64,000 bases of DNA from positions 1 to 64,000 of the forward strand of contig NW_020845022.1 of the NCBI RefSeq assembly GCF_003704095.1, written 5' to 3'. Within the stretch, counting starts at the first letter, position 1; every line of letters begins with the position of its first letter. The position numbers were made by a program, and so were the translations under genes. Under the pieces are notes generated by a model. The model worked only from the letters and a program-made list of their open reading frames with translations. It was not told the origin of the DNA and searched no databases. Of this stretch, positions 15,981 through 32,729 are shown in pieces. The DNA comes from Pocillopora damicornis. Its lineage: Eukaryota.

Positions 15981-16652
15981 ATGACAGCTACAGGTTCCAA
16001 GTACGAAATTCCGGAAGCAGTCGACGAAAACTTTTTGGCGACATTGGGCAAAGATGTGGAGATGCAGACATTTAAAACGAACCTTGCTCCCGAAAGTGAA
16101 AGTTCTACTAAACAAGACAAAGCAGTGGTACTGCTGTGTGTTGGAACTCTCACAGGAAAAGAAAATCTATTCGTGAACGAGCATTTCTGCCGCACGCCTC
16201 CTAAAGGGTCTCGTTTACTGACCGTATGCATGGATATCCATTTAAAGAAGATCAAATCGTCATCGGAAAATAAGGAACAATCATCGGCAGCCATTTACGA
16301 TATCGATCTTGAAGTTTACAAGGGATTCAATTTTGACTCTTGTCACGGAAGTATAGTGTTTTGGACGCCTGAATATCCGGCATCATTAGGAGAGGTCAAA
16401 AAATGGGTTAAATCAATTAACAAGCTTGCAAATTCGCGAGTTCCTCTCGTGCTTATAACGTTTAATTCGAACAATTTGGATTGGATAGGAAGTGGAAAGA
16501 TGTTTGATAGCGTGACAACTTTGCAGCGGTTTTGTCGCGAGATGGGTTTCATTTCGTGGTATGAGATGAAAGCGCGTGACTGGGACGGGCAGGTTTTCGA
16601 GCAAGCCATAACTTGCTTGATGGATGAGATTAATTTGGTAGAATCTACTTGA
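15981..16652 (+). CDS. Intronless, highly degenerate Rab32/38-like protein A (putative pseudo-GTPase), 223 aa
   Basis: Intact ATG-to-TGA ORF. C-terminal half (VPLVLI...FCREMGFISWYEMKAR...AITCLMDEI) aligns with Rab32/38 and with the ORFs at 28981 and 31980. G1-G5 motifs are eroded. Confidence 0.75.
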   Translation: MTATGSKYEIPEAVDENFLATLGKDVEMQTFKTNLAPESESSTKQDKAVVLLCVGTLTGKENLFVNEHFCRTPPKGSRLLTVCMDIHLKKIKSSSENKEQSSAAIYDIDLEVYKGFNFDSCHGSIVFWTPEYPASLGEVKKWVKSINKLANSRVPLVLITFNSNNLDWIGSGKMFDSVTTLQRFCREMGFISWYEMKARDWDGQVFEQAITCLMDEINLVEST

Positions 16653-17314
16653 TAACTGGCAGATTCAGCACCCTAAATGATTTGCGAGGAATAGTAAAAC
16701 TGGTCTTCTCTCCAGGATCAACATAATGTGGAACGAACCACAGAATTTTCATGTTAAAACTCAAGGGGGCTTTTCAATAGTCAGAACTGACCAAGTATTC
16801 ATCTCATTCTTTCTTCGTTTCGTTACAATTCATTCATCATTGATCAGCATTACTTGAAAAAATCGATTTATTGTTAAAAGTTTAAAACTCACAGTCATGA
16901 GTTGAATGTTACAACTGTCGGTTCTGGCTAATGACAAGCACCCTTAAACAATCGTGGTTTCAAATTTTCGATCTAGGAAGAGATAAAGTGTTTTTTTGAA
17001 CTAGTGGTGTCGATAAAAATGTCATAACAATATTGAATTAGTACATTTGACAAAAATCATTTGGATTGAGGACACTTTAATACTACGAAAGTACTCAAAA
17101 TTCAAATATTTACAAAAGTAACAAAGAATTGAACGAAAAATTCCTTTTGATGTTGTGAAGTGGGTGCCCTAAGACTCATCTCCAACGAAGTGGTCAAGCA
17201 ACATCAATTATGCCTTTTGCCCAAGGTTCTTATCTCAGATGGTCGACATGGTTCATTAGTTGTTTTTTTTTTTTTTTAACTACAGCTGATGCAACAAACT
17301 TTAAATATTTCACT

Positions 17315-29712: not shown

Positions 29713-31979
29713 CGATTGTTTGAACTTCTGGTGTGGATACTGAATGCATGCCAAATTTGTAAGTATTTCCGGTCTCGGTGTTCAATTACATCATTGTTAC
29801 CCTGAGCGGTTGTGAACAGTCACGAGATACTCTAAGTGGCTTTCTTCACAAACACCGTATTCGGAAGTTCATTCTGTAAATTCCTGAAGAAATAAAACCA
29901 AAAATAGCTTCTAACTTGAAAATCACGAAATACGATTTGTCATCGAACTCTTTAAACCGTGCGTGAAGTTCATTCCATGCTTTTTGAAGGAAAACGAACG
30001 ATAATTTGGAGCAAATCAAACTCGTGAACGTGGGTTATTGTAGCATCGTTTCGTAACATTTACTATATTACGCTCCATATCATTAATTGTACAGCAAGAG
30101 AAATAGTTTTGAATTCGGCGACTGAATTAAGAAACAAGACAAAAAGTAATGTTGTGGGACCTATTCAGGGTTTTTATTATTTATTAAATTAATTTTGCAA
30201 AATTCTATTGGACTTTTAAGCCCCAAAGAGAATCTCTTTATAATTTTTTTTCTCTATAGGTAATGTTCAAAATCAAATGTTAAGATAATGAGAGACTTAA
30301 CTTCGCTAGAAGAATAAAAAAATTTTGGAGTGCCCTTGGCTGCCTCTTAGTACTTAGACAGTATATTCCATGATTCCTCACCATAATCCGTAAACAGATT
30401 AAAGGAGTGTGCCCTGCTTAACTCCAATCTTCCCTAACACCCAGTAGTTCTAAAGCCGGTTACCGCTAAAACAATAACAAAAAAAATTTGTTTTTTGATT
30501 TCTCATGCAAAAATTCAGGATTAAGGGGAGGGGGAGAGGGCGGGGGGTCTTGGGTTAACTCTGTAGGGTTCTAGTGCCGCATGAGGCAAATCCTTAGTTT
30601 TGAATAATCCTCTCAAGCTTGCGAGCACGCCCTCATTAGGCTAGCCTACCTGTAGCCGCACCCTCCCCTCTCGCTTCCGTTTAACCTGTTATTAGGCGCG
30701 AGCTTTTCTTCGCCCGCGGAAAATTATCAGGCCTTGAGCAACGCGAGCGGCAAAAGGTGTGCGAAGGGGTTTAACACTATTAGCGCCAGACCCCTGGAAA
30801 ACCTCCCCCTGACTCTTCTCATCTTCCCGCGTCGTACAGCGCTAATAACGAGAACCTACTAAATCCACTCTAGCTCTGACCTTCATGTAGCCGTACCCTT
30901 CCCTACCCCCCCCNNNNNNNNNNCTAAATCCACTCCAGAATCAAATATGGACGAAAGGGGATTGGTCGGGCTTCACAAACGCGGAGTTTTATAAATGCAA
31001 TCAGTTTGTGATGAGGACGGTATCCAAATATAATTTGGTTCAGTTTTGGTTTACAGAATGTCGTCCTCTTCTAGGAAGTCCAACATATCAAAAACGGGGG
31101 AAGGATCGAGTGACTCGTTCTGTTAAAGATAAAACTAGTGATGGTGTAAACGCTTTAATTACTCCGCCGATTAACTTATTTTACTGCCGAATGGTTTCAA
31201 AGATACCTCTCTCGCCACCACTACACGCCAATACCAAACATGTAAACAACGAAGAACATCGCGTAAGTCAAAAGAAAACAGCGCAAAAAAAATTTACGTT
31301 ACGCGGCGCGCCGAACTATAGGAGTTAGGCCTTAGCTAACAGCGGGCTAACATCGGGCTAACATCAAGTTCTTTCTTCGCCGATTTTTTTTTTTTTTTTT
31401 TTTTCGCGCGACGGAGCATATAAAATATACAAAAGTAATCAAATCTCATGTAATTGCATCTAGAGCGGGTTTCTTAAAAACATAGACAACTTCTTGAATT
31501 CACACACACTTCCGTGTAACTTTCTAAAAACCTCTTCCAGATCAAGGGCCAGGTTCAGGATGAGAGAAATGCTTTTGGACGAGCCAGACGCAGTAACAAA
31601 ACTTGTGATATGAGAACACACAGGGGAGCCTTAGCACACACCTTATCGTGACGCGCACGGTAGCCTTGAGAGTTGCGGCGCTTGCCACAATTCTTAGACT
31701 GGCTTTTAATTTGGGATGTACAAGGGCTTTAAGATTGATAAAAGGCGCTAAATGTAGTTGCATCATCCTTACGGCCGCCTTCCGTCCGTGACAGGCGCCT
31801 AACATGCGCATGATGCGTATGAAATCTTCGAAATCTTGCATTGCCGGTTTCGAAACTCAAAGGACATTTCTATCTAGCTACCACACTGCCAATTTAAGAT
31901 AGAAACAAGAAGAATATAACCTCGACAGCTTGAAAACTAAGAAAACACAATTGTCAACTTCGAATACCTGCTTTCAACC

Positions 31980-32729
31980 ATGACCACTTGTGTTGTATCC
32001 TACGAGAAACCGGAAGAAGAGAACAAAGCAGTTCTGAGCTTACTTGGCGAAGAAATACAGTTGAAATCGTTCAAGAAAAACATTCTGGAAAATGGAGATC
32101 AGCTTCATCTGAAAATAATAATCTTAGGCGACCCAAAGTGGAAAGAGAGGAATCTTATGTCTTCAAAAATAATCCCATTCTGTACCCCGTGGTTACATCG
32201 GGAGGAGATAGTGTGGAGAAATTCGTCAAATTCACATTCTTACACTCTGAAGATCCAGTATTGGGAGCTTTCGCTCATCGACAGATTTCGCTTTCACTGT
32301 GGTAATCGCAAATTGTGCAAATCATGTGATGGCGCGTTGCTGTTCTATGATGTAGAGAAGCCGTCAACGCTTTCCATCGCCCTTGAAAATTTCGAGCTCA
32401 TACAAGCAGCAAATCCTAGCTCTGAACGAAACGGCTTTAAGGTTCCAATCGTTTTGATCGCGATAAATAATAATGCAAACGAAGGTTCCTTTCCAGGAAG
32501 TGAAGAAATGGTCAAAAGGAAGGCGGAAATGGACAAGTACTGTTCACACTATGGATATGTCACATGGTTTGAACTTCCATCACGCAAGATTGACGATTAC
32601 AAGCGGGTGATCGCCAAAGCTGTGGATAGAATTCTACAAGAAATAATTGATTTGTCTCGAAATGGCGTGACAATCTGGGGCGATTGGAAACTGAAGTATG
32701 ACACAAAAGGCAGAGATCATTCTTCTTGA
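31980..32729 (+). CDS. Intronless degenerate Rab32/38-like protein C (putative pseudo-GTPase), 249 aa
   Basis: LKIIILGD, IVW, LKIQYWE...DRF, GALLFYDVEKPSTL, NG.KVPIVLIA, MDKYCSHYGYVTWFE and AV..IL.EI follow the Rab32/38 layout. The N-terminus is shared with ORF 15981. Confidence 0.8.
   Translation: MTTCVVSYEKPEEENKAVLSLLGEEIQLKSFKKNILENGDQLHLKIIILGDPKWKERNLMSSKIIPFCTPWLHREEIVWRNSSNSHSYTLKIQYWELSLIDRFRFHCGNRKLCKSCDGALLFYDVEKPSTLSIALENFELIQAANPSSERNGFKVPIVLIAINNNANEGSFPGSEEMVKRKAEMDKYCSHYGYVTWFELPSRKIDDYKRVIAKAVDRILQEIIDLSRNGVTIWGDWKLKYDTKGRDHSS

Follow-up and report, generated by a model that had tools for sequence, protein, structure and literature searches.

Rab GTPases (guanosine triphosphatases) of the Rab32 class govern lysosome-related organelles and cell-autonomous defence against intracellular microbes, and in corals and sea anemones it is the fate of the phagosome that decides whether algal symbionts are retained. 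Rab-like proteins that dispense with a lipid tail are also familiar, RABL2, RABL3 and RABL5 being examples in which nucleotide is still bound. The pseudo-Rab EhRabX10 of Entamoeba likewise has no lipid tail (PMC8514894), and in the class-I pseudoGTPases, such as CENP-M, the pG domains of p190RhoGAP and the N-terminal domain of AAGAB, the GTPase fold is present with its nucleotide motifs lost (PMC5593906, PMC12490416). The locus considered here lies in the coral Pocillopora damicornis (assembly GCF_003704095.1), on contig NW_020845022.1, which is 85,432 bases long; the stretch analysed, termed the window below, comprises its first 64 kb, positions 1 to 64,000 of the forward strand. A sequence-only reading of the window had proposed that three open reading frames (ORFs), here called genes A, B and C, encode Rab32/38-derived proteins whose motifs for binding guanosine triphosphate (GTP) have been destroyed.

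The present analysis places A, B and C in an intronless tandem cluster of six genes, part of an Anthozoa-wide family that is derived from the Rab32/38-Rab32LO-Rab29 class and has lost its nucleotide motifs and prenyl cysteines. We give this reading a probability of roughly 0.7, a joint figure that takes in the mechanism set out further on (no GTP, solubility, constitutive contacts, B as adaptor or competitor, A and C as younger derivatives). The parent class, which takes in Rab32LO/Rab32B and Rab29/Rab7L1, is also known as the FALK class, a FALK stretch after switch I being diagnostic for it (PMC4728774).

All three plus-strand ORFs are present where they had been proposed, with unbroken reading frames (Table 1). 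An in-frame TTG lies upstream of B at 28942, and the ATG at 28981 is the start in B orthologs. The mutual homology of the three proteins is far above chance: in tblastn and blastp comparisons A and B share 30% identity (E ~1e-24 to 1e-27), B and C 32% over the C-terminal 150 residues (E ~1e-23 to 1e-25), and A and C 23% (E ~1e-13 to 1e-15). No fourth copy was found by tblastn within the 64-kb window. The assembly gap between B and C was considered as a possible disturbance of an ORF and ruled out, as it is intergenic; contigs of two RNA libraries span it and have 44 letters where the assembly has 10 N, which makes its flanks continuous.

The degenerate motifs are seen in the alignments as they had been quoted. 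The G1 element reads GTLTGKE in A, GDYTGFGKKG in B and GDPKWKE in C, and the canonical P-loop GxxxxGK[ST] is matched by none of them; G3 reads YDIDLE, WDVAEHE and WELSLID, G4 TFNS, ENIP and AINN, and G5 ARD, SRE and SRK, in the same order. These losses extend well beyond the window, because canonical G3 (DxxGQ), G4 (NKxD) and G5 (SAK) are wanting in all 65 family rows of the alignment, that of an octocoral included. The C termini tell a similar story. A, B and C were described as having no prenylation cysteines, and none of them ends in Cys; across the family a CC or CXC tail occurs in 0 of 65 rows, and a Cys anywhere in the last six residues in two (a single Cys each). The FALK stretch is unaltered in two family members (P0023 and P0025) and changed in A, C and B, the last of which has FYLN.

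One element of the sequence-only reading has to be given up. The DWIGxGK insertion, the FWxPxxPS block and the N-terminal YExPE...LG...FKxN motif were regarded as private to pairs of the three genes and are instead family-wide. The N-terminus YExPEE...LGxEVEMxTFKTN, carried by A, by C and by proteins of the ATKYELPEE type, is the ancestral form and has been replaced in the B clade. The family ancestor would have lost the P-loop Ser/Thr, the DxxG glycine, NKxD, SAK and the C-terminal prenylation cysteines, and would have gained the WIGxGK-containing insertion at the former G4 site.

Descent from the FALK class is indicated by sequence and modelled fold together, because matches to Protein Data Bank (PDB) sequences, the family profile and the fold of B all have Rab32/38 as their best counterpart. 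The family profile scores 114 bits against Rab38, 110-112 against Rab32 and 84 against Rab29, and at most 58 against any other Rab. Searched against PDB sequences, B matches Rab38 (8e-23) and Rab32 (2e-20), followed by Rab29/Rab7L1 (1e-14) and then Rab11 (3e-11); for C, Rab38 (3e-7) and Rab32 are the sole matches below an E value of 0.01. B passes the Pfam thresholds for Roc and Ras, and A and C fall under the curated cut-off; homology was drawn from paralog, PDB and profile searches because Pfam alone recognises only B. An AlphaFold2 model of B, built from 67 family sequences, has a predicted local distance difference test score (pLDDT) of 81.7 and a predicted template modelling score of 0.81, and shows a complete G-domain topology after an N-terminal helix. 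Foldseek places Rab32, Rab38 and Rab27 at the top of its matches to this model (target-normalised template modelling score ~0.8), the best being Rab32 in its complex with VARP (0.82-0.84), in agreement with the Rab32/38 ancestry that had been put forward. Foldseek matches of the A model are weak, and the ESM Atlas features yielded generic Ras/Roc/Arf clusters only.

The exact parent within the class is less sharply defined. Exon-wise tblastn against the three canonical FALK-class genes of the genome gave matches too short (25-46 bits) to discriminate among them and was set aside. The His in the DVAEHERF motif of B resembles the Rab32LO signature (PMC4728774), yet the A-like clade has Gln at that position; Rab32LO, and not Rab32/38, is a possible parent. 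A tree of 77 rows built by maximum likelihood separates the family from three canonical Rabs at 99% support in the Shimodaira-Hasegawa-like approximate likelihood-ratio test, but says little on the parent because these three sequences form a thin outgroup. Within the family the tree resolves a tight B clade (19 rows and the window's own B), an A clade of 23 rows with 100% support and a long stem (0.89) that is nested in the ATKYELPEE group, and a C clade of eight rows with 100% support and a longer stem still (1.39).

Family members are found in Scleractinia, in Actiniaria and in one octocoral. Orthologs of B that are 60-95% identical occur in many assemblies, including those of Porites evermanni and Acropora, where they are named 'Ras-related protein Rab-38(-like)', and Nematostella, where the name is 'predicted protein'. 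A has orthologs of 47-97% identity, Oculina patagonica among them, and C has eight only (65-98%). Other clades include proteins of Actinia tenebrosa ('Rab-32A-like', 'Rab-38-like'), Nematostella ('Rab-32') and Desmophyllum ('multi-organism toxin transport'). The octocoral Dendronephthya gigantea contributes a family member named 'Rab-38-like' with Glu for the G3 Gly, DN for NK, the WIGxG insertion and the FWG block. Because this protein shares the family hallmarks, the motif loss probably predates the split between Hexacorallia and Octocorallia, a dating that depends on a single octocoral sequence. The family appears small and restricted, since a HMMER scan with A over 1.84 billion cluster representatives returned only 69 proteins at E <=0.001, and all of those inspected are family members.

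Comparisons between species show how these genes have been maintained. The ratio of nonsynonymous to synonymous substitution rates (dN/dS), estimated by the NG86 and YN00 methods respectively, is 0.20 and 0.25 for A against a contig of 68% amino acid identity (L016, run SRR32085972) and 0.18 and 0.27 for C against one of 78% identity from the same run (L017). For B the values are 0.07 and 0.12 against a contig of 95% identity (L018), and 0.03 and 0.04 against a Porites evermanni-type contig of 84% identity (L011); more distant B pairs have reached saturation at synonymous sites. Because these between-species ratios are low in A, B and C, long-term purifying selection is indicated for all three genes and is by far the strongest on B. 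The long purifying selection that had been deduced from the open frames is borne out by these ratios, which lie well under 1, and by the span of orthologs from Scleractinia to Actiniaria and an octocoral.

The distribution of constraint within B is informative as well. Among 18 B-clade sequences, from stony corals to sea anemones, the former nucleotide loops (counted as P-loop, switch I, switch II, beta-4, G4 with its insertion, and G5) are 63% invariant vs 32% for the remaining G domain; the P-loop segment alone reaches 81%, and the N-terminal tail 2%. An abandoned site would not be expected to form the most conserved part of a protein, which suggests that the former nucleotide face of B is a repurposed site and not one in decay, either a protein-binding surface or a pocket for something other than GTP.

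Transcription was assessed in the region of B and C, positions 27900-33800, with aligned contigs of four poly(A) RNA libraries that come from two studies. On B the RNA contigs follow the genome without a joint from 28627/28736 to 30221-30329 and end just past an AATAAA signal, and over 28612-30302 a related species has a contig that matches at 86% identity. Word depth on B is 37-595 vs 4-12 in the intergenic 30.4-31.7 kb. B thus looks like a gene of one exon that is well represented in the RNA libraries, within the limits that contig depth measures abundance crudely and that DNA can be present in such libraries. Near C, a minus-strand exon at 32900-33451, with a clear acceptor (ttctttcag, minus strand) at ~33449-33451, shows one and the same loose end in each of the four RNA libraries (depth 100-205); it runs towards C, whose 3' end it may overlap. 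The stop codon of C (32727-32729) is polymorphic, with TGA changed to AGA in two of the four RNA runs and a TAG directly after; this stop-loss yields a 250-residue variant that is present in the protein cluster.

The set of three genes that had been described is real but incomplete, as the contig holds six members. The three further paralogs, found by searching the assembly and located beyond the window, are unbroken, follow the pattern ATKYELPEE / GDYTGGxxTK / WEIAEQERF / DNxxK...WIGxGK / SRDWxSGEK, and are degenerate at every G motif. All six genes fall within ~70 kb and each is one single ORF. The cluster may continue on another contig, because the outermost paralog is cut by the contig end. 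Some of this arrangement recurs in Acropora, whose contigs carry a minus-strand LSM gene ~7.5 kb upstream of the B ortholog, as in the window. In Porites evermanni-type and Acropora contigs the 10 kb around B contain no C homolog, a pattern that agrees with C being a younger, lineage-restricted duplicate. The neighbouring transposase, LSM and kinase ORFs, considered as a possible functional link, give none.

A retro-derived origin had also been suggested, and here the intronless state of the cluster genes stands while the origin itself is plausible and not proven. The canonical FALK-class genes of the same genome match exon by exon only, with at least 3-4 coding exons each, and because all three are multi-exon, retroposition followed by tandem duplication is a plausible origin for the cluster. 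Intron loss is not specific to the family, since several canonical Rabs in the genome, with full G motifs and CC-type tails, are also single ORFs, which makes intronless copies of Rabs common here. A poly(A) remnant and target-site duplications are expected to have been erased, because the origin would predate Anthozoa and the tandem duplication would have come later.

Table 1. Positions of genes A, B and C and of other features in the window, on the remainder of its contig and elsewhere in the genome.
Feature	Position	Strand	Remarks
Gene A, ORF	15981..16652	+	223 aa; candidate fast-evolving pseudo-Rab, scleractinian-wide clade; N-terminal YEIPE...LG...FKTN
Gene B, coding sequence	28981..29712	+	243 aa; conserved core member; GDYTGFGKKGG / WDVAEHERF / ENIPTSKRGKPxxWIGPGK / SRE
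Gene C, ORF	31980..32729	+	249 aa; most divergent candidate pseudo-Rab; N-terminal YEKPEE...LG...FKKN kept
Gene B, inferred transcript, unspliced	28612..30329	+	5' untranslated region ~370 nt, 3' untranslated region ~600 nt
Polyadenylation signal of B, AATAAA	30313..30318	+	from the sequence; RNA contigs stop at 30221-30329
Assembly gap between B and C	30914..30923		outside every ORF
Further intronless paralogs	same contig (C1657), 80396-81103, 83072-83764, 84759-85415	-	assembly search; the last is cut by the contig end
LSM/Sm-type exon	21377-21706	-	between A and B; PF01423, E 6e-18
PiggyBac-type transposase ORF	516-1448	+	PF13843 DDE_Tnp_1_7, E 6e-65
236-aa ORF with most of a protein kinase domain	40241-40951	+	PF00069, E 5e-50; probably a single exon within a larger gene
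Canonical FALK-class genes, multi-exon	contigs C3096, C1129, C3631		C3096, Rab32/38-like; C1129, Rab32LO-like with GHERFGHM; C3631, third gene, possibly Rab29-like
Intronless canonical Rabs	C2045:1117358-1117861; C2045:1477791-1478279 and 1479348-1479839 (tandem); C2955:109245-109742; C1689:204073-204579

Several observations weigh against the reading of A, B and C as a family without nucleotide function that is kept by selection, and they fall to two different alternatives. The conservation of the former nucleotide loops in B would also be expected if these were atypical G proteins that still bind GTP in a non-canonical manner, another nucleotide or a phospho-ligand, B then being regulated by its ligand. 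The pocket would be formed by the P-loop GDYTGFGKKGG, which is one residue longer, together with the WIGPGK insertion and the Thr of switch I. B still has the Lys of the P-loop, the TIGVDF switch I with its Thr, and the Asn of G4, its model retains the complete G-domain topology, and a sea-anemone paralog (P0048) has GDWTGGKS, a canonical Walker A. Because these residues are kept and the pocket loops are strongly conserved, B may bind some non-canonical ligand. This account has to contend with the joint change of all five G motifs: no clade retains the Ser/Thr that coordinates Mg, the Gly that contacts the gamma-phosphate or the Lys/Asp of NKxD that specify guanine, and most members have lost the catalytic Gln as well. 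The P-loops are, moreover, wholly unlike between clades (GDYTGFGKK, GDYTGGxRTK, GTLTGKE, GDPKWKE), a diversity that a single common ligand would hardly explain, and we regard a retained ligand as unlikely.

The second alternative accepts a function for B and takes A and C, as found here, for decaying duplicates on their way to pseudogenes, their open frames being those of survivors. Recent change in A and C is near neutral: contigs nearly identical to the window's A differ from it by 4-8 nonsynonymous and two synonymous codons, and RNA-library contigs differ from C by five nonsynonymous changes, one stop-loss and two synonymous changes, compared with no nonsynonymous and two synonymous differences in B. 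These short-scale counts are small, but they match the larger number of variants in 90% protein clusters (225 for A and 244 for C vs 23 for B) and the approximately twofold number of variable sites among sampled A and C variants relative to B; on this sequence evidence A and C look recently relaxed or diversifying. In the AlphaFold2 model of A, residues 113-223 have a pLDDT of ~90, and residues 29-112, the half that contains the P-loop, both switches and beta-2/beta-3 and in which switch II carries a deletion, are below 50. RNA depth is low on C, at 8-41 from 31531/31787 to 33050, a weak signal only a few-fold over intergenic and one to which DNA in the libraries may contribute; the Logan contigs that include A (L036, L037) follow the genome without breaks and could themselves be DNA. 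The absence of C near B in the Porites and Acropora contigs would also suit a transient duplicate. Decay is difficult to square, however, with frames that are intact in all sampled orthologs (22 full-length-range sequences of the A clade, from several genera including Oculina, and seven of C), with the between-species dN/dS of 0.18-0.27 for A and C at a dS of 0.5-1.0, or with the conservation of the N-terminal motif and the C-terminal half in both proteins. We consider it very unlikely that A and C are merely decaying.

Under the preferred reading of a family of pseudo-Rabs maintained by selection, the proteins would neither bind nor hydrolyse GTP and would not cycle between GTP- and guanosine diphosphate-bound states, as in the class-I pseudoGTPases. 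They would be soluble, since they have no lipid anchor, and would act via constitutive protein-protein contacts, not by cycling as a switch. The working surface of B would be its remodelled P-loop/switch face, given that no other region of the protein is as conserved; B may be a fixed-state adaptor, and may bridge or compete for partners that canonical Rab32-class Rabs use. A and C would be younger, faster-evolving derivatives under weaker or diversifying constraint.

A more specific proposal goes further and is, in our view, distinctly unlikely as stated. Here B would be a constitutive, nucleotide-independent regulator of Rab32-class traffic, that is, of lysosome-related organelles and of phagosome or symbiosome maturation in Anthozoa, with its invariant P-loop/switch face as a binding site that has newly evolved. 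The A and C types, polymorphic and quick to change, would act as decoys for microbial factors aimed at Rab32-class Rabs, or as sensors of them. Both the decoy role and the symbiosome role are speculative. Ancient and selectively kept look-alikes of Rab32 that lack the switch could set or buffer the Rab32-class pathway. The family also offers a natural series for research on pseudo-GTPases, running from P0048, in which Walker A is kept, to the heavily eroded A and C, with B as a case in which a dead pocket is more conserved than the remainder of the protein. The labels 'Rab-38(-like)', 'Rab-32' and 'multi-organism toxin transport' will mislead coral expression and enrichment studies.

Comparison with the systems introduced above locates the family more precisely. 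Rab32 and Rab38 are its best matches in both sequence and fold, and have in common with it the TIGVDF switch I, FALK or remnants thereof, the ERFxxMT switch II and the FCxxxGFxGWFE block before G5 that is typical of the class. Unlike Rab32/38, the family is without GxxxxGK[ST], DxxGQ, NKxD, SAK and the C-terminal prenylation Cys, and has in addition the WIGxGK insertion, the FWGPxxPS block and the N-terminal YExPEE...LGxEVEMxTFKTN that the B clade has replaced; its coding sequences are intronless, whereas the canonical Rab32-class genes of the same genome are multi-exon. With the class-I pseudoGTPases it shares the loss of motifs on a GTPase fold and a putative role as a protein-protein interaction module. 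Those pseudoGTPases are unrelated lineages or domains within larger proteins, in contrast to a stand-alone, Rab32-derived, multi-copy family restricted to Anthozoa. EhRabX10 and RABL2/3/5 resemble it in being Rab-derived and soluble, with degenerate motifs, no prenylation or both, but they branch elsewhere in the Rab tree, and none is of the Rab32 class or cnidarian. A literature search found no description of this Rab32-derived anthozoan family, and the gene models are already public in NCBI, where they were named automatically ('Rab-38-like', for example). Neither pseudo-GTPases nor Rab-like proteins without a tail are new as kinds, and what is new at this locus is the reading of the genes rather than the gene models themselves.

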